Source: Penicillus capitatus
Taxonomy: Eukaryota > Plantae > Chlorophyta
Direction of reading: 5' to 3'
Length of the DNA stretch: 64,000 bases
NCBI GenBank assembly: GCA_965649825.1
Contig: OZ287695.1
Span: 186,001 to 250,000 of the forward strand
Shown here one piece after another: positions 2,890 to 64,000 of the stretch (within the stretch, counting starts at the first letter, position 1; the number at the start of each line of letters is the position of its first letter). The translations under genes were made by a program, and so were the position numbers. A model generated the notes under the pieces. It did not search any database. It was given only the letters and a program-made list of their open reading frames with translations, and was not told the origin of the DNA.

Positions 2890-5288
2890 TCATCTTCTGT
2901 ATCGCTGCCTCTTGAAATTGAAGTAGAGATGTAGAATGCCACGTTCGAACGTGCATTTAAAGCCCTTCTTGTGCGAATACTCCCATTCCTTATTCACAAT
3001 CCTGAACGCCAAATCTTCATACGGAGGCCCTGCCTTGAATTTCAGCCAGCACGTTGCGCTGTCCTTAGCATCTGGATCATTCTCAATCTCGTAATACGGC
3101 GGCGTCTTCTTATCAATCAAATCTGGATAGAAGATATTAAACTTGTACCCCTGAACCACCTTGGGCGGCGGATTGTCGTGATCGTAATGCGTCTGATTAT
3201 ATTTGTTCCACTCATATCCCGTATGCACTCTACAAAGGCGGATCATGAGTATAGGATCAATTGTATCATATGTAGCGACTGGACCTGTTGAAGTATTTTG
3301 GTTTTCTCGGCCGGTACTTCTCGTGCCACCAGTAAACGTGACTCTCGAGCTCCACTTCGCCTCCAAAAGGCAGATACCCTTCGTCTGACCCCATATAAGA
3401 GATGGCAGCGGATTTCAGTCGATGAAACGTCGCCTCATCTGAGTACCAAACCTCTCCCCTTTCAATTTTGTAAGCGCAAAAGTCATTGCTGACCTGGATC
3501 TGTCGCCAACGGTGCCTCTGTAACCATCGAACAACTGGCCGCCGGCATCTGCACACAAACCACACGTGCATTGTATGACAACGACAATAAGGAGCTTCAC
3601 TTCTTTAGCGCGTTTCTTGAATGTTTCTGAGTACTGCAGCTGAACCTGAGTCAGGACAGAAGGCAACGGATTTCCAGATCACGTGACAGAAAGATCGAGT
3701 ATTACTTGGCGTCGGAGAAGGGCTATCTGGTCGTTGTCTTCCTCTTCTGCCACCACGTCTTTTCCATCGAAGGACGCGCACGGTTCCGGCGAAGGGCATT
3801 CTTCGTGGATCTCCGTTCCTCCGCTCTCGTTGTCCGACGAGGCGCATTCGGCAACCTCTTCTACATTTCTCTTGGCATCTATGTCTTCTTGCGTGTCGCA
3901 CAGAGGCGCCACATCGTCCAAGGTCGTCTTCTGTAATGTACTCTGGATGCTGCGAATCTTCGTCTTCAGCTTCTCAAGCTTCAAATTCTCCAGGACTCTC
4001 GTCCAGTAGTCTGGGTCGATGCTGTCAGAGGTTAGTAAATCGCCGATCTCGGCCTCCAACTGCACGAGTTCTGACAGTGACTTGCCTGGACGGCGGTGAG
4101 AACAATGCAAACGCGAATAGAGTGTGTCGGCGTTCTACCTGTCAGCATGTTCTGGATTTCGTCCTCGACGTAAAACTGCCGCTCTCTGGTGAAGCCAGAA
4201 GGAAGCTGGAGGCCATCCTGCTCCTCTTTCGTCTCCTGTTTCTTGGCAAGATTCAATTCATACTCGCAGATCGACTCCATACAGGACCAATACTCCACGT
4301 GCGACGCATCCTGGCAGTCCAGGGACTGCAGACGCAATCAACGACCGTTTATACCAATGATAAGTGGCAGACAGTTTGAGCAGTACTTTAAATTCTTGGA
4401 TTTCTGTCATGAGAGCATTCAGCTCATCCACATTCATCTTCTGCAGAATCTTGTATGCCGGTTCCATCTGTCCCCAGCACAGTTCCGGCAACAACGCACG
4501 CACCAACGCATCGATAGGTCGCATCCTGTCCGATTCGATACGGATACGGGAACTGGCCAATGCCTAGATCAACCGTCCATTGTGCACGAGAACGCAGGGG
4601 CAGGTGGACGCACTTGCTGAAGGAGGAAGTCTTCTTCCTTCTCGATGGCACTGGCCGCTTCGGCAGCCAACCGTGCACGTTCAATCATACTCTGTACACA
4701 TAGCCGATCGTCAGAATGGCGGCTGTGTGCACCGATGGATCCTTGCCAGCTCCTCTTGCTGCCGGGCGCGTTCCGTTTCGCGTTCCTCTCGACTCCTCTT
4801 TGCTTTCTCGATCTCGTCCTGCCTCACATCCACTGTCAAAAGCGAAGCGCTGCCGAAGGGGCACCAGTCGTTGATGTTGACGTTCGCGTTCTGCTCTGGC
4901 GTCCAAGTCCTTGACCGAGACACCACTCGCGAGCTGCTTTTCGATCTTCTTATTCCAGATGAAGCTGAAAGACAAGCATATGCCGCTTCCGAAGCAGCAG
5001 ACAGCGTAAGAGAGCACCGTTCGTGGAGGTTCGGATCCTGAAAGCGATTGTCTGCCACTCCGTATCCCTCTGTCGCCACGTGATGCTTCTTCAGGTGCTT
5101 CACGACCTTCTTACTCTGAGCACAGCACCGAATGCCAGGTGAATGCTTCAGACGGCGACGCTCACGAGCTTCTCAACTCTCCTTTTGCGTAAGGACGCGT
5201 CATCTCTGTCCTCAGACTCCGCCGAAGGGCTGCGCCTTCGATGACGATGCGAACGGTGACGACGCGAACTCGATTCGCTCTTTGGCAT
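2890..5288 (-). CDS. CACTIN: Cactin (spliceosome-associated), multi-exon
   Basis: The C-terminal cactin domain reads GYEWNKYNQTHYDHDNPPPKVVQGYKFNIFYPDLIDK...GPPYEDLAFRIVNKEWEYSHKKGFKCTFERGILHLYFNFKRQRYRR. The N-terminus has RS-rich and FIWNKKIEK segments. The start at 5288 (MPKSESSSRRH) is inferred. Confidence 0.93.
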
Positions 5289-26800: not shown

Positions 26801-28164
26801 TCGGCATACGACACATTTTTCTCAGAATGCGAGTTCTTGAGGCTACGTTAGAAGAGGCAGAAGCGGAGGAGGAGATAGAGGTTATAGCAAAAGACGAACA
26901 GGCAATCGAGATCGCCGAAAAAGCTCGTCAAATACTTGAGAGCACAATCGACCATGTTCTAATCCGCGAAATTATGGTCAAGGAGATCCAACAACTGCCC
27001 TGCATTCTGAAAGAATTCTCTAAACTTCTCGATGAGACCGTTAACGGAATAATGTACATGCTCGCATGTTCGCAACACTTAGAATGGAAGGAAATGGCGA
27101 AGATCACGGATATTTTGAAGCTCGCGAAGCACTCTCCGAAGCACAGTCATAAAGTGATCAGATTCATCTTGCAACTAGCCAAACACGTCGATAGTTGGTG
27201 CGACAAAGACGAATGCATCAGAAGGTTCAAGTGGGTCGCAGCATATGTGTCACATAACGCCGAAAAACTTTTGCCGACGATAACAAAAGGGTGTGGCGAC
27301 GAAAACCAGCGCGTGAATGAAGCAGCGAAAGAAGCCATCCCTCAAATTGTCGCGGCGGCTCCGCATTTCGCCAAACAACTTTTGCCGGAAATGACGAAGA
27401 AGTGCGACGACGAAGACTGGTTTGTGTGTGTAGCAGCGATAGAAGTCATCGGCCGAATTGTCGCGGCGGCTCCGCATTTCGCCAAAGAACTTTTGCCGGT
27501 GATGGTGAAGAAGTGCGAGGACGAAGACGAGTTCTTGCGTCTTTTAGCGATAGAAGCCATCGGCCAAATTGTCGCGGAGGCTCCGCATTTCACCAAAGAA
27601 CTCTTGCCGGTGATGACGAAGAAGTGCGACGACGATCACAACAGCGTGCGTGCGACGGCGATGGAAGTCGTCGACAAGATTGTCGCGGCGTCTCCGCATT
27701 TCGCAAAAGAACTCTTTCCGGTGATGATAAAGAGGTGCGACGACGAAGACTGGAGCATACGTGAAGCAGCGATAGAAGCCATCGGCCAAATTGTCGCGGT
27801 GGATCCGCAGCACGCCGGAGAGCTCATGCCGACGATGGCTACGGGGTGCGACGACGAAGACGACGAGGTGCGCTATGCCGCAAGAAGGGCACTTGAGCGT
27901 GTAAGCGCCGAAGAAGCCATTTCTTCGGTAATATCGTCTCCTTCTAATAACAAGGGCGGGTTTTTATTCTTCTTCGTGCAAAACTCATTCACGTTAGATC
28001 CCCCTGCAAAATCTAAAACGGTTCCCTTTATCTTGCACACAACTTCTTCACAAACGATTGGAAAATGGGACAAGGAAGCTATCGATGTGTTTATCGAGAA
28101 GTTGAGACAAGAATGCGATGAAGAGTTTCCCGGGCTTCTAGAGAACATTGGTATCAAAGAATAG
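23884..28164 (+). CDS. NLR-like STAND protein: helical N-terminal domain, NACHT NTPase and HEAT repeats; interrupted by an in-frame TAA at 26326-26328
   Basis: Walker A is GNPGSGKT and Walker B is LLMLDGLDE, followed by LLLSRP, IPVTAHILC and QFPHLTFHEYFAG. It has six 37-aa HEAT repeats and one 51-nt intron (25396-25446). Confidence 0.88.
27226..27891 (+). repeat. Six tandem 111-nt HEAT repeats
   Basis: The consensus is IGQIVAAAPHFAKELLPVMxKKCDDEDxxVRxxAIEA, with a DNA-level period of 111 nt (e.g. 27343 vs 27454). Confidence 0.92.
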
Positions 28165-59408: not shown

Positions 59409-61320
59409 ATGGACACGACGTCCATGGCGTCAACATTCAAGTACTGCCATTCTTCCTTTGACAACCTCCTGTATTCGAGGCTGCCTGTTCAGAACCTGCG
59501 CTCATTGGATGCCTCGCGGCCTAAGGGGTTACCCGGTGGGTTCCGCACCGAAAACGACTGGAAACAGGAGGTGCGTCGTAGAGTACTACCCTCAGCAGTG
59601 GGTGAACTCGATGTCTAGGTACACGAGGCGATGGTCGTGGCTGAAAACGAGAAAGTGATGTCGAAGAGTCTGCGCGATGCCAGTCGACGCCTCGAAGTCC
59701 GTCGCCGTGTCTGTCGCCGATGCATCGAACGAACCGTGTGGTGGTCGCTAGGCGGATCTCAAGATCAAAGTGCAGACGGAAGAGCAACTCGTCGAAAATG
59801 CGCTGCGTCATCGTATCGCCAAGACATCGGAGCTTAAGGCGCCGCCGGCCGCCACCCTATCCCGCATCCGTGATGTGACAGGTGTGTCGTGTGTAGGGCC
59901 TCGTCGAGAAGGCGATGGATAATACGGATAGTGAGCGGCAGAGTCTCGAAGTGAGTTTGAAGAAACTGCAGGATCGCGCTCGGAATATTCGAAAGAAGAT
60001 GGACATCACAGACGGCCGCGTTCAGGTTCAATAGGAGTGAGATGTGTGAGAGGGTGAGCGTTGATGTGACGGCAGTGTCGCTATGATCGACCCGCGCGGG
60101 AAATGGTGAACGATGCCGTGCAGCTGCAGCTGAAGAAACAACGCCTGATGCTGCAAAGCTACTTGGCCGGGATAGAGACACGGGCGAAAACGGCGAGCAC
60201 CAATATCCAACGCCTGGAGCAGATGCGCCACGTCCTGCAGAAGGACTTCAATGCAAAGGTGGGCGCAAAGAGGTCATAGGCAAAAGAGTGAGAGATCGGG
60301 ATGACTGCTGCAGGCCAAAGCGCTGGATATCGATCAGCAGGCGCTGCAAGGAGAGGTGCCGCAGAAAGCGGGTTGGGATCAGAGCGAGTTTGCCTCAGCC
60401 ACCGCCGCCGTTCAGCCGCATCAGTGGAGCAGGTCGGTTCGAAAGAGACACCCAGAAAAGTGTGACCATCGATGGCACCCAGGAAAACGGAATCTGCGAT
60501 CAAAGAAGCCAATCGCCTGGCACGCGAGACCGAACACTTCCGGCAGGAGTCGATCAAAATGCTGCGCGAGAATGAAGAGAAACGCAAAGAGGTAGCCGCC
60601 ATCGCTCTCCCCATCGTTACCTCGTGACCTTGGCGTTGGGCTCAGTTTGCCGCATCGCTGAATCGGACGATGCTTGAGAAGCTCAACGAGACAGAAGGGA
60701 TCAAACAGCACATCGAGTGCAAATTAGATGAAGTGCTCAAAGAGATCGAAGAGGCTAAACATCGGAAGATAGCTCTCGAGCAGGCCCTTCGCGACAAGAA
60801 GTGTGCCCACATGCGTCGAGCGAGGCTGATGTGACAGGCGTCGTACAGGCAGCCGATGGAGCTCGCCGCACAGCGGCTGTCGTGGCGAACGCGACGTCCC
60901 AGTCACGAATGCGTCAACGACGAAGCGCACCGTGCGTTGGTCGGCGAGCTGCAGCACATAACGTCCGTCACCGCATCGCTAAAGTCCAAAATCGCCGCCG
61001 TCGATCGTCGCATCCGACAGCTAGAAACCCAACGCGATGGATTGAAGGATAACATTCAAGACAAAGAACGCAGTTGGAAAGTGTGACCTCGACAGGATCT
61101 CACTCTTTTGCCCAGCACGTATGCAGGTTGACGAGACATGTGTGATGCTGGACGGACGTGTTGCCCTTGCCCATCCGCCTATGAGTGTCTGGAGCTCTGC
61201 TAGCTCGGTGCGATCGGTGGGATCCCGTCGATCGAATCTTTCTCGTGCCTCATCGGCATCGGCACAAAAGCGAGTCGCGTTTTGAATGCCGTCGAGTCAA
61301 GATGCCGTCGGTGCGTATAG
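59409..61320 (+). CDS. Tektin-like flagellar coiled-coil protein; 3' end approximate
   Basis: A multi-exon coiled coil contains the tektin-like signature RTRRPSHECVNDEAHRALVGE. Confidence 0.7.
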
Positions 61321-61480
61321 GTCAGAGATTTTGGGTCGGATCTCTCGATTGGAGGATGAGGTTGCGACGGCCCGAACGGAGAGAATTGCGCTGGAAGAGA
61401 AATTGGCCGATCTGACATCGACGTGAAAAAGGTGCGATGGAGATGGTTGTCGTGCGAAACGGGTTTCTTTGTTGAACGCT

Positions 61481-62904
61481 TTATTTTGTGCGATTTCGCA
61501 AATGTTCGAACGAACGTATGGTCCTCTGTGCCGCTTCGTCCATCGATACCTGCACAAACATTCCGCCACCCCGTGCGCGCGAGCTGCATTGGATGTCACT
61601 TGGGGTCGGTAGCCCAATTGCTCGACAGATTTTTTCGAATTGAACGCCCGGTGCCTCGTCAAGAGCTTCAGCCGACTCATGGAAAGATCGGAAGAGATTT
61701 TGATAAAGGGCTTCGTCAGCGGGAGGACCAGAAACTGAAAAATGAAGATTAGGAGGAACATAAACCAGTACGGCAGTCTACACACGGACACGCCAATTCA
61801 ACAGCCGGCGAGACACAGAAGGGCGCCGCACTTGATGTGCGGTCTCTCGTAGCCGAGTCCTTCCAGCAGATCTCCCGTAAACTGCCAGAACTTTTTGGGC
61901 TCCTGGACACGCACATGAGCAGGGAGTGAGTGATGTGACAGGGAGACGGCCGTGCTTGGTTCGTGATGAAGTAGGCTTGGCCGGCGATGGGCGAAGCGAG
62001 TGTGAGTTTTTCGGCAGCCAGCAGATGCGCTTGGACGACATTGCCCACATAGGTGAAGTCATAGATGTTCTCGCCGCTTCCAATCATGTACTGCACGACA
62101 GCTGTCCACTGAGAGACCACCATCGACGTGTCCAGCCCTCACTTTCATTTTCCCCTGCTTGGCACGTTTGACCAACGTTGGTAGCAGCAAAGCATCTCCC
62201 TCGCCGAAGATCGCGCTCGGTCTCAGAGCGCAGGTGGCTAGATGACCTCCACGACCGTTGGCAGCCAACACCATCTGCTCTCCAATTGCCTGCATCTCAC
62301 ACTCCATCTTCAATTGATCCGTTTGATCTGCAGATGAGTGGCGGCGGTACTTTGGTGGACGTGTAGTGGTCGATGGGGGGAGAGGCATAGCCTAGCTCTT
62401 CCTCGCTCTTGTCGAGGACGTCTGTTCCGTCGAAGGCGACCGATGCGCTGGAAGTGTAGATCAGTTTCTCCACCTGCTGCTGCACGCAGGCATCGATGAC
62501 GTACTGCGTCCCGTCAATGTTCACACGTCGCATCAGATCCTCACTCAATGCATTCTCAGACGTCGGTGCCGCCGTGGCCACGTGAAACACGAGCTTGACA
62601 CCTGACAGGGGCGCATTCGTGATAAGGAGCGGCAGAGTCGAGGCATCCAGCACCTTTGATGCCATTGGCCGCTTGCTCTGGCTGTGTCAGATCGCCCCGC
62701 ACAAACGTCACATCATCTGGTAATGGATCACTCTGTTGTGGAGGATTGAGATCGAAGACAGTCACATCATAGCGTCCACTATCGACCAGCTCTTTCACCA
62801 AACGTCTCCCCACGAAGCCACATCCACCTATCGACTGTCAGCAGAGGGCAATGTCGAGGAGCGAGAGAGTGACCTGTTACAAGGCACTTAGTTTTGGCCG
62901 CCAT
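61481..62904 (-). CDS. NSDHL: 3-beta-hydroxysteroid dehydrogenase / C4-decarboxylase (NSDHL/ERG26 family)
   Basis: The spliced N-terminus is MAAKTKCLVTG-GCGFVG, followed by VNIDGT, YTSSASV, YTSTK, LRPSAIFGEGD, DFTYVGNVVQAH and GQAYFITN. Confidence 0.92.
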
Positions 62905-63232
62905 TCTGAGCCTCTGCCTGCTTCTGTGCTCTTTGACGCCGCGCGAGTTCTTTGTATTCGCGGAATTTCTTCCCCGAGACCTGCTTCGCCTCAGGGGGAT
63001 ACGTGACGTAGGGCCTCTGTGATATAGAGGTCAACACAAGCAGGATTCTCCTGCGATGGCTTACGCTCTTGACGATCCAATCCAGAGCTTCAGGCGACGA
63101 GACCAGAACCAAAGCAGAGATCGGGAGTGTCACGTATAACGCGAACTTGAACGCCTAGGAACACGACAATCGCCCGCGACAGAGAAGAGTCGACGGCATC
63201 CATACTTCCAGCGCAAAACCAGTGCGAGCCAT
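62888..63232 (-). CDS. PET100: PET100-like cytochrome c oxidase assembly factor (81 aa)
   Basis: Exons 63232-63206, 63154-63065 and 63016-62888 give MARTGFALEAFKFALYVTLPI...SRPYVTYPPE..., matching the remembered plant Pet100 motif LExxKFxxYVxxP...YVxYPPE. Confidence 0.82.
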
Positions 63233-63558
63233 GCGTTTGGATGCCGATGCATCAATGGACACATTAAAATGGCTTCTGACAGCGACAGGTGCATGACAGC
63301 CATATCGACATGCTGGCAATGATACGACGACGCGCGGAAAACGGATGCACCCTGTTCGATACATTAGCCTACGGTTGTTCTCTTCATACATCACTCTTTC
63401 AGCTGTTCGACTGGGCAATGAATGTTGCCTCGAAGCACGGTTTGCATCTCATGTGTGTAAGTCCGTTCAAACGCGTCGTACCACGTCGATAAAACCTTAC
63501 GAGGGCAGCGCGCCATCCATTTGAGCTTTTCTGCCGTTCGATTATCCGTTGCGATAAG

Positions 63559-64000
63559 ATGAGATACGCATGGTTCACCGCGCTGCTCTCGCTCTTCCTG
63601 ACAGCGCGCACGTGCACCGGCAGTTGGAGTAAGGCCATTACATCGGTGAACTTTTCGAAGACGGCGGATGCGCTGTGTATCCTAGATGCGGTCTGGCGCA
63701 ATACATCCGACGGCCGTCCACACCGAGACGTTCAGGTGTATCCCGCAGCCGTTTCTAAATGCCGATCCTTCATGCTCGGCCTGTTGTCACACAGGAATTC
63801 GAAACAGGCTTTCTGAATTCCCTTCTTCCTGACGTGCTCGACAAGATCGAGCGTGACCGAGTGGAATCTGCCGGTAATGCGATGACACCGAACATCGTGG
63901 TATGCACATTGCGTTCCAAAACGAAGCTTTTCAGAAATATGTGGTGGTAGGGAGGACACAAGGCCCCTGTTGGAAGATTCCCTTACATGTGTAGCATACG
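63559..64000 (+). CDS. 5' part of another secreted trypsin-like protease (T7), truncated by the window
   Basis: The signal peptide is MRYAWFTALLSLFLTARTCTG. After two introns the sequence reads MTPNIV-GGHKAPVGRFPYMCSIR. Confidence 0.8.

Follow-up and report, generated by a model that had tools for sequence, protein, structure and literature searches.

An overlapping PET100/3-beta-HSD gene pair in a seemingly Bryopsidales-like alga, a probable ortholog of a conserved chlorophyte bicistronic unit

Are two genes that share part of their coding sequence translated from one mRNA or from two? The question arises on the minus strand of a 64,000-nucleotide stretch of algal DNA (the window, by which we mean the whole stretch that was analysed), where a gene for a small protein of the Pet100 family runs into one for a 3-beta-HSD enzyme (HSD). 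The original prediction read the pair as a bicistronic unit in which HSD is reached by leaky scanning. It had placed the HSD ATG 17 nt inside PET100 and in another frame, and all of these coordinates were confirmed on the minus strand. The gene models and their junction are as follows.

63232-62888, minus strand: PET100 gene model, three exons, 81 aa, ORF of 246 nt
63206..63232, minus strand: PET100 exon 1, ATG at 63232, encodes MARTGFALE
63155..63205, minus strand: PET100 intron 1, 51 nt, GT..AG
63065..63154, minus strand: PET100 exon 2, carries the transmembrane segment AFKFALYVTLPISALVLVSSPEALDWIVKS
63017..63064, minus strand: PET100 intron 2, 48 nt
62888..63016, minus strand: PET100 exon 3, ends with the stop TAA at 62890-62888
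62888..62904, minus strand: stretch shared by the end of PET100 and the beginning of HSD, 17 nt, in different frames
62904 (ATG) to 61481 (stop), minus strand: HSD gene model, eight exons, 351 aa, ORF of 1056 nt
62874..62904, minus strand: HSD exon 1, encodes MAAKTKCLVTG
62828..62873, minus strand: HSD intron 1, 46 nt, donor 15 nt past the PET100 stop
62827-62654, 62601-62351 and 62289-62143, minus strand: HSD exons 2-4
62090-61956, 61902-61832, 61777-61600 and 61549-61481, minus strand: HSD exons 5-8
between these exons, minus strand: HSD introns 2-7, of 52, 61, 52, 53 (GC donor), 54 and 50 nt

PET100 is a widely conserved mitochondrial assembly factor of cytochrome c oxidase (complex IV). 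The product of the upstream ORF (ORF 1) matches the Pfam family Pet100 (PF09803) with 44.1 bits against a cut-off of 24 (E = 2.6e-11); the match covers profile positions 3-71 of 73, and the blocks FKFALYV..P and YV.YPPE are present in the alignment. The protein is small, with an N-terminal transmembrane segment and a conserved Y-x-x-YPPE region, the features that define the family, and its function as PET100 is predicted from these. Its last ~10 codons (QAEAQNGGQN) form a lineage-specific tail that reaches into HSD. [quoted passage not shown] The NAD(P) motif reads TGGCGFVG, and Y148 and K152 of YxxxK are invariant across 44 sequences. The best match in the searched protein collections is 70% identical, the best Chlamydomonas match is CHLRE_12g518650 (Cre12.g518650), and several homologs are named sterol-4alpha-carboxylate 3-dehydrogenase in their source records. 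Judged by its sequence, HSD is a predicted sterol-4-alpha-carboxylate 3-dehydrogenase of the ERG26/NSDHL type. A plus-strand ORF ending at 61426 was rejected as the convergent neighbour, as Pfam Tektin matches put the end of that gene near 61086, and scans of the window for Rfam families, tRNAs and tandem repeats returned nothing relevant at the PET100/HSD locus.

The same pair is listed as a bicistronic locus by Dueñas et al. 2025 (PNAS, PMC11892635). In A. protothecoides, UTEX250_A12.36865 (Pet100, 201 nt) and UTEX250_A12.36860 (3-beta-HSD, 1074 nt) were found by Iso-Seq on exclusively bicistronic transcripts with a 5' UTR of 15 nt, an inter-ORF distance of 22 nt and no AUG before ORF 2; the predicted locations are mitochondria for PET100 and the ER for HSD (PMC11892635). 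The C. reinhardtii pair Cre12.g518645/Cre12.g518650 is classed as 'obligatory polycistronic' (Gallaher et al. 2021, PMC7896298; Dueñas et al. 2025, PMC11892635), with 476 and 170 Ribo-seq reads, an inter-ORF distance of 97 nt and no AUG in ORF 1 plus the inter-ORF region. It is the one ortholog for which translation of both ORFs is documented. Eight more species have the pair according to Iso-Seq, PacBio, EST or colinearity evidence (PMC11892635); the transcript types support it in Dunaliella, C. zofingiensis, C. sorokiniana and Volvox, and five more genomes are colinear. The split between Chlamydomonas and Auxenochlorella lies ~700 million years back (cited by Dueñas et al., PMC11892635). Both the mechanism and the PET100/HSD pair itself were described before (Dueñas et al. 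2025, PMC11892635); the novelty that the original prediction implied therefore falls away, and the mechanism as such matters little here.

Comparison with these systems places the window locus among them. It resembles the A. protothecoides pair in the gene families and their order, in its short ORF 1 (246 vs 201 nt), in an ORF 2 of ~1.05 kb and in the absence of any AUG from the ORF 1 start to the ORF 2 start, but has a 17-nt overlap where A. protothecoides has a 22-nt spacer. A. protothecoides is a trebouxiophyte, whereas the alga of the window, known here from genomic DNA alone, seems to be a Bryopsidales-like ulvophyte and thus to belong to a class outside the published bicistron work. With C. 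reinhardtii it shares a PET100-like mitochondrial ORF 1 whose first intron follows '..LE', and the lack of AUGs; unlike the window, C. reinhardtii has 97 nt between the ORFs, an ORF 1 of 312 nt and an HSD without introns (eight exons in the window). The C. reinhardtii ORF 1 is too diverged for a Pfam Pet100 match in a search that used a called ORF there. That called ORF (L084, 2635-2904), which had no Pfam match, was rejected as ORF 1; the true Chlamydomonas ORF 1, with three exons, was rebuilt by hand, and its length agrees with the published 312 nt. Orthology to UTEX250_A12.36865/36860 is supported by the matching Pfam families and by PET100 intron positions common to Bryopsis and Chlamydomonas: the position of intron 1 after '..LE' is common to the window, Bryopsis and Chlamydomonas, and that of intron 2 is identical in the window and Bryopsis.

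The original prediction had proposed conservation in other chlorophytes as a check, and the pair was indeed recovered from the Bryopsis genome and from RNA contigs of several green algae. The Bryopsis genome carries a PET100 gene, unannotated, with both intron positions as in the window (introns at the locus of 167 and 349 nt); 51 nt separate its end from the HSD ATG, and the 261 spliced nt contain no ATG. Spliced RNA contigs from several green algae join the PET100 coding sequence to HSD, and both ORFs were found on the assembled contigs L003, L086, L001, L089-L092, L093-L097, L098-L102 and L103-L107. Two of these are complete from ATG to ATG, with 384 nt in L095 and 472 nt in L099 and no ATG in either. 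The 5' 110 nt of L001 were rejected as an odd PET100 N-terminus, as they are a haem-peroxidase fragment (Pfam An_peroxidase, E = 4e-6); since L001 is chimeric at its 5' end, only its 3' PET100 part was used. A scan of metagenome contigs with the HSD alignment yielded mostly bacterial or distant relatives (22-46% identity); in the one informative contig, L004, 14 nt separate PET100 exons from HSD downstream of them. For one relative, two of the five RNA contigs (L098 and L102) run in by way of PET100 intron 1, without the exon that carries the PET100 AUG, so HSD-only or unspliced RNAs exist at least as minor species.

We regard the window locus, with a probability of about 0.75, as an ortholog of the conserved chlorophyte PET100/3-beta-HSD bicistronic unit, in which HSD would be translated by leaky scanning. 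One mRNA probably makes both proteins; for the alga of the window, we infer the single transcript and leaky scanning. The core of the original prediction is thus well supported, though indirectly, through orthology to the published pair; its polyadenylation switch, its implied novelty and the idea of a Kozak pattern conserved at the locus lack support.

The most readily visible mark of the unit is the stretch between the two start codons.

62905..63229, minus strand: ATG-free tract, 226 spliced nt after the PET100 ATG, in any frame

From the PET100 ATG to the HSD ATG the spliced sequence measures 229 nt and holds no further ATG, and the only genomic ATGs between the two starts, at 63203 and 63199, both lie in PET100 intron 1. 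Local composition predicts 3.1 ATGs for such a tract, the ATG density of the whole strand 3.9 and that of the HSD CDS 4.5; the earlier figure of about 3.6 was thus a fair one, and the 229 nt without ATG are confirmed. The Poisson probability of finding none is ~0.02-0.05 for the tract of the window. Segments of equal length are free of ATG in ~1.5% of cases on the minus strand and in 0 of 829 inside the HSD CDS, and 14% of dinucleotide-preserving shuffles of a 227-nt version of the tract had no ATG. Taken alone, the tract is therefore unusual only to a modest degree. Pooled over six loci, 0 ATGs were observed against ~19 expected, and the depletion signal is strong only once the orthologs are added; all complete loci examined retain the tract, including those in which it measures 384-472 nt.

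The start-codon contexts are less uniform. In the window, PET100 starts at AAACGC-ATG-G (C at -3) and HSD at CTCAGA-ATG-G (A at -3); compared directly with each other, the two differ at -3 and have G at +4 in common. The bases at position -3 agree with the weak-then-strong contexts of the original prediction, but the PET100 ATG is better described as sub-optimal than as very weak, because G at +4 is kept at both starts. Bryopsis has the same pattern (C, then A, at -3). The pattern is not kept throughout the orthologous loci: Chlamydomonas is reversed at -3, with A for ORF 1 and C for ORF 2, and in the relatives represented by L095 and L099 the base at -3 of ORF 1 is a purine.

In the proposed mechanism, one capped mRNA would start shortly upstream of 63232 and end past 61481. 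Some scanning 43S complexes would begin translation at the first AUG, sub-optimal with its C at -3, and give the 81-aa mitochondrial PET100; the remaining ones would pass through 226 AUG-free nt to the second AUG, which has A at -3 and G at +4, and initiation at this well-placed codon would yield the ER sterol enzyme HSD. Because ORF 1 ends 17 nt downstream of the second AUG, a ribosome that terminates on PET100 would already have left this AUG behind, and the geometry favours leaky scanning over termination-reinitiation. A fusion protein made by readthrough was rejected, HSD being in the +1 frame relative to PET100; overlap and frame together exclude readthrough and disfavour reinitiation. 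The size relation also resembles that of known cases, with ORFs of 246 and 1056 nt and an inter-ORF distance of -17 nt on the same strand, next to published medians of 291-357 nt for ORF 1 and 1.1-1.2 kb for ORF 2 (Gallaher 2021; Dueñas 2025). In A. protothecoides bicistrons, in vivo mutations of the Kozak sequence, of start codons and by added AUGs had the outcomes that leaky scanning predicts: a stronger ORF 1 Kozak sequence lowered ORF 2 output and a weaker one raised it. The added-AUG experiment is also compatible with reinitiation, as its source remarks.

Upstream of PET100 lies a further set of start codons that bears on this scheme.

63294, 63264 and 63252, minus strand: three upstream ATGs in one common frame

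They lie 62, 32 and 20 nt before the PET100 ATG, and a uORF starting from them, if transcribed, continues past the PET100 ATG as far as a stop in exon 2. Scanning would be caught at these ATGs in any transcript with a 5' UTR of 20 nt or more, which suggests either a 5' UTR below that length or an additional uORF layer.

Two other accounts of HSD translation were weighed against leaky scanning from a shared mRNA. The pair could consist of two independent, overlapping monocistronic units in a compact genome, with an HSD TSS inside PET100 or just downstream of its ATG, PET100 mRNA polyadenylated in HSD exon 1 or intron 1, and PET100 exons doubling as the HSD 5' UTR and so giving rise to the ATG-free tract. 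Compactness is evident, with all nine introns of both genes at 46-61 nt and only 326 nt from the PET100 ATG to a divergent ORF at 63559. A separate promoter has no room, however, and the arrangement is kept in non-compact genomes as well (Bryopsis, with introns of 167 and 349 nt, and Chlamydomonas). A TGTAA after the PET100 stop and the relative's two contigs without the PET100 AUG exon agree with separate units, as does the report that 87 or more other Chlamydomonas loci produce both mono- and polycistronic transcripts (Gallaher et al., PMC7896298). Against these stand the spliced RNA contigs of several species, in which the PET100 coding sequence is joined to HSD, and orthologous loci that are exclusively bicistronic by Iso-Seq; at exclusively bicistronic loci the downstream genes are almost without the H3K4me3 TSS mark. 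We consider independent units unlikely, at about one chance in ten.

Less probable still is that HSD is reached by reinitiation, whether after PET100, with the 40S subunit moving back 17 nt, or after a short overlapping uORF. The ATG-free tract is equally compatible with this, and the three upstream ATGs in one frame would supply a uORF that ends in exon 2, after which the next AUG is the HSD start. Yet the PET100 ORF is 246 nt long and ends downstream of the HSD AUG, the 5' UTR of the A. protothecoides ortholog measures 15 nt, and the uORFs of Chlamydomonas and L099 end before the PET100 AUG, so that an overlapping uORF is not conserved. The A. protothecoides Kozak changes also move ORF 2 output in the direction opposite to that predicted by reinitiation.

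The original prediction further proposed that a chlorophyte poly(A) signal chooses between mono- and bicistronic output.

62877..62881, minus strand: TGTAA pentamer, inside the HSD codons CTT GTA ACA (Leu-Val-Thr)

The pentamer begins 7 nt past the PET100 stop (62887-62881) and is followed after 4 nt (62877-62874) by the HSD intron 1 donor. Cleavage near 62860, within HSD intron 1, would then compete with splicing of the 46-nt intron and leave either a PET100-only or a bicistronic mRNA. It is the sole TGTAA on the minus strand between 60800 and 63400, and UGUAA lies ~17 nt before the cleavage sites of 50-70% of mRNAs in the late-branching classes of chlorophytes, among them the ulvophytes Ulva and Acetabularia. 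The pentamer is, however, a by-product of the conserved L-V-T codons (codon choice alone gives it an estimated chance of ~1 in 24), and it is absent at the corresponding position in L001, L003, Bryopsis and Chlamydomonas. Nor does it give any sign of marking gene ends in the window: TGTAA ranks 16th of 30 same-composition pentamers, shows no enrichment after long-ORF ends (22% of TGTAA sites fall in the 150 nt behind such an end, vs 12-36% for same-composition pentamers, in what is a noisy test), and was not found after the HSD stop or the convergent tektin stop. Among the ORF 1 genes of published exclusive bicistrons, UGUAA is at or below chance, and 0.1% of reads are poly(A)-adjacent. The proposed switch thus finds no backing in the relatives examined or in the window, and we consider it very improbable. 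The same small likelihood attaches to the wider idea that the ulvophyte lineage remodelled the ancestral bicistron into a switchable unit from the overlap, the UGUAA and the 46-nt intron. If the switch were true, the balance between PET100, a respiratory-chain assembly factor, and the sterol enzyme HSD would depend on the competition of polyadenylation with splicing, and an overlapping uORF, if the three upstream ATGs do open one, could act as a further layer of control.

With leaky scanning on a shared mRNA as the preferred reading, the junction itself is the distinctive feature of the window, the sole locus with overlapping ORFs in the comparison set. Five published loci have an inter-ORF size of 0, and CDC26/TTM3 (A. 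protothecoides UTEX250_A12.38655/38650) likewise combines a short ORF 1 with a stop at or beyond the ORF 2 start; such touching or overlapping bicistrons involve other genes, and the published table records them as 0, with overlap lengths not readable from it. The 17-nt overlap may lie at the long end of the range for such bicistrons. Conserved peptide-coding uORFs offer a further parallel, being short upstream ORFs on the same mRNA with translation shared out via start-codon context, and the inter-ORF spacing of algal bicistrons is statistically like uORF-to-ORF spacing; unlike these, ORF 1 of the window encodes an independently functioning conserved protein, PET100, and not a regulatory peptide.

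The PET100/3-beta-HSD bicistron extends to ulvophytes (Bryopsis and the Bryopsidales-like alga of the window), and since the published cases are from Chlorophyceae and Trebouxiophyceae, each of the three core chlorophyte classes has it. On this view, a complex IV assembly factor of the mitochondria and a sterol enzyme of the ER have long shared one mRNA. That PET100 is unannotated in the Bryopsis assembly indicates that annotation pipelines miss the first ORF, and the ATG-free tract provides a clear sequence-only marker by which such units can be found in unannotated genomes. The inter-ORF spacer, finally, can shrink to a 17-nt overlap, an arrangement that is hard to reconcile with reinitiation and therefore serves as natural evidence for leaky scanning.

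The overlapping genes, a putative mitochondrial cytochrome c oxidase assembly factor (PET100, ORF 1) and a 3-beta-HSD/sterol-4-alpha-carboxylate dehydrogenase (HSD, ORF 2), were modelled as follows.

63232-63206, 63154-63065 and 63016-62888, minus strand: PET100, three exons from ATG1 (63232), introns of 51 and 48 nt
62890-62888, minus strand: PET100 stop codon TAA, 14 nt downstream of the HSD ATG (ATG2, 62904)
62904 to the stop at 61481, minus strand: HSD, eight exons, 351-aa product
62873-62828, minus strand: HSD intron 1, 46 nt

The 81-aa PET100 product matched Pfam Pet100 with 44.1 bits (E=2.6e-11, cut-off 24) and the HSD product matched Pfam 3Beta_HSD with 253 bits (E=3.5e-75). Removal of HSD intron 1 restores the motif CLVTGGCGFVG, which, like the HSD N-terminus and the YxxxK pair (Y148, K152), is conserved across 44 aligned green-algal homologs, several of which are named sterol-4-alpha-carboxylate 3-dehydrogenase in their source. 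Re-reading of the minus strand reproduced the coordinates, start-codon contexts and TGTAA position of the original prediction and bore out its placement of the HSD start inside the PET100 ORF in another frame, with an overlap of 17 nt and HSD in the +1 frame relative to PET100. HSD intron 5 (61903-61955, minus strand) has a GC donor (CAA/GCACGG ... CCAG/GAG) and is a GC-AG intron, since the ITNQ/EPKKFW junction, conserved in all homologs, is obtainable only with that boundary. The nine introns of both genes (61481-63232, minus strand) measure 46, 48, 50, 51, 52, 52, 53, 54, and 61 nt, a narrow size range indicative of a compact genome whose introns are minimal. Elsewhere in the window, a tandem array (27297-27861, period 111 nt, 5.1 copies, 77% matches) may be a coding repeat, as its period is a multiple of 3.

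By sequence comparison, the locus is an ortholog of a published PET100/HSD bicistron. In A. protothecoides, UTEX250_A12.36865 (InterPro 'Protein Pet100', predicted mitochondrial, ORF 1 of 201 nt) is paired with UTEX250_A12.36860 (3-beta-hydroxysteroid dehydrogenase/isomerase, predicted ER, ORF 2 of 1074 nt) in a list of loci from Iso-Seq transcripts in which both ORFs were seen only together (Dueñas et al. 2025, PMC11892635). This locus has a 5' UTR of 15 nt, an inter-ORF distance of 22 nt and no AUG ahead of ORF 2, and the accompanying conservation table records PacBio support for the pair in Chlorella sorokiniana, colinear pairs in Prototheca cutis, Chlorella vulgaris, Nannochloris desiccata, and Coccomyxa, and a tie to Chlamydomonas Cre12.g518650, with ORF 2 orthology marked uncertain (PMC11892635). 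Cre12.g518645/Cre12.g518650 is itself a high-confidence 'obligatory polycistronic transcript' (ORF 1 312 nt, ORF 2 1206 nt, inter-ORF 97 nt, 476 and 170 Ribo-seq reads) with no AUG in either ORF 1 or the spacer, and is supported by ESTs in Volvox and by Iso-Seq in Dunaliella and Chromochloris (PMC11892635). CHLRE_12g518650 was the top Chlamydomonas match for the window HSD, and ORF 1 reconstructed from the Chlamydomonas genome was exactly 312 nt long, with a PET100-like product whose first intron is positioned as in the window PET100 (..LE / xFKF..).

Among named species, those with the HSD closest to that of the window are siphonous ulvophytes, namely Caulerpa lentillifera (66%), Bryopsis sp. 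(58%), and Ostreobium quekettii (57%), so the window probably derives from an alga of Bryopsidales type. Bryopsis sp. KO-2023 (BSYQ01000010.1) carries a complete three-exon PET100 at 3224-3949, directly upstream of HSD, that is missing from the assembly's called genes, the annotation having overlooked ORF 1 of the bicistron. Both of its introns are positioned as in the window PET100 but are longer (167 and 349 nt versus 51 and 48 nt), and its stop lies 51 nt ahead of the HSD ATG, with zero ATG in 261 spliced nt. PET100 exons on a metagenome contig (L004) end 14 nt upstream of HSD. In assembled, intron-less RNA contigs of HSD orthologs, the PET100 ORF lies on the HSD molecule itself. The pair, whose conservation in other chlorophytes was a check on the original prediction, was found in published loci, the Bryopsis genome, and RNA contigs.

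RNA contigs carrying both ORFs
L001: inter-ORF 3 nt; 5' part most likely chimeric
L086: inter-ORF 30 nt
L089-L092: inter-ORF 87 nt; spacer with two ATGs
L093-L097: inter-ORF 183 nt; L095 complete, 384 nt from ATG1 to ATG2, zero ATG
L098-L102: inter-ORF 268 nt; L099 complete, 472 nt, zero ATG
L103-L107: Chlamydomonas-type ORF 1; one internal ATG and one in the spacer
L003: both ORFs on one contig

In the metatranscriptome contig L001, positions 1-110 are part of a haem-peroxidase coding sequence (Pfam An_peroxidase E=4e-6) fused in frame to mid-PET100, a junction that is most likely an assembly chimera. At L003:72-81 (JGI Ga0255580_1021662) the PET100 frame reads CTG GCC versus ATG GC(T/G) in orthologs, with an in-frame stop three codons upstream and zero ATG in the 281 nt ahead of the HSD start; PET100 of this species may start at CUG, which would be an extreme case of a weak ORF 1 start, or the CTG could be a sequencing or assembly error. 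PET100 intron 1 sequence replaces exon 1 in L098 and L102 (two of the five contigs of that species), leaving no AUG exon; these two could derive from pre-mRNA or from a minor internal start. Isoforms also differ between L089 and its conspecific contigs L090 and L091, in which the transmembrane exon of PET100 is absent, and the opening 22 nt of L099 are non-biological Illumina adapter.

Inter-ORF distances in relatives range from +3 to +268 nt (+22 nt in A. protothecoides, +97 nt in Chlamydomonas) versus -17 nt in the window, the sole overlap, which in the alignment arises from a non-conserved C-terminal PET100 extension of ~10 residues.

The predicted ATG-free tract was confirmed: in the 229 spliced nt that begin with ATG1 and end just before ATG2, no further ATG occurs, whereas local composition predicts 3.1, the ATG density of the strand 3.9, and that of the HSD CDS (1056 nt, 21 ATG) 4.5. 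Equal-length windows are ATG-free in about 1.5% of cases on the minus strand and in 0 of 829 within the HSD CDS, and zero ATG occurred in 14% of dinucleotide-preserving shuffles of a tract version 2 nt short. Taken alone, the tract is suggestive, and a non-chance origin is not compelling. Pooled over the window, Bryopsis, Chlamydomonas, L003, L086, and L001, 0 ATG were observed versus about 19 expected (Poisson about 5e-9), so that the depletion is a conserved and selected property of the PET100/HSD locus. The weak context proposed for ATG1 held in part: C is present at -3, but G is kept at +4, making it only moderately weak. In Bryopsis, too, the -3 base is C for ATG1 and A for ATG2; across orthologs the weak-then-strong pattern is not conserved. 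Upstream of ATG1, at distances of 20, 32, and 62 nt, three ATGs (63252-63294, minus strand), all in the HSD frame, open an ORF of 24-38 codons that passes over the PET100 start and ends in exon 2, a uORF if transcribed. Either the 5' UTR is shorter than 20 nt, as in the A. protothecoides ortholog, or there is an extra control layer; the uORFs of the Chlamydomonas and L099 orthologs terminate before ATG1.

We put at roughly three in four the probability that both proteins are made from a single mRNA on which HSD is reached via leaky scanning, the mechanism originally predicted and judged right from the published ortholog, the mutant results in A. protothecoides, and the overlap geometry. Ribosomes scanning past ATG1 would reach ATG2 on the same mRNA, and a ribosome ending ORF 1 would already be beyond the ORF 2 AUG, a geometry that favours leaky scanning. 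The locus shares the anatomy of the A. protothecoides bicistrons. There, ORF 2 output rose when the start codon of ORF 1 was removed or its context weakened, and fell when that context was strengthened or an extra AUG was placed between the ORFs, matching the prediction of leaky scanning and not of IRES or reinitiation.

The further proposal that a TGTAA switch between polyadenylation and splicing decides mono- or bicistronic output is not unreasonable, since the late-branching chlorophyte classes, the ulvophytes Ulva and Acetabularia among them, ordinarily use UGUAA as their poly(A) signal (cleavage ~17 nt later). We nevertheless regard it as very improbable. The pentamer derives from the codons CTT GTA ACA for a conserved L-V-T, is missing at that position in L001, L003, Bryopsis, and Chlamydomonas, and with 72 copies ranks only 16 of 30 among same-composition pentamers in the window, where no enrichment after long-ORF ends was found. 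In exclusive bicistrons, moreover, upstream genes have UGUAA at or below chance and 0.1% poly(A)-adjacent reads; the same study notes at least 87 further Chlamydomonas loci whose output is mixed (Gallaher et al. 2021, PMC7896298). A tektin (flagellar protein) gene at ~60103-61086 (plus strand) converges on HSD, with Pfam Tektin matches on three ORF pieces reaching profile position 369/383 at 61086. No TGTAA was found between the two stop codons, which are ~395 nt apart, nor downstream of HSD as far as at least 60800, nor beyond the tektin stop as far as at least 62000. The stop codon of HSD shares bases with an AATAAA (ACAAAATAAAG).

Earlier publications already describe this type of system, its mechanism and this very gene pair. 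New here are an additional member from the ulvophytes, a class unsampled in the published bicistron surveys (PMC11892635, PMC7896298), and the contraction of the spacer to a 17-nt overlap.
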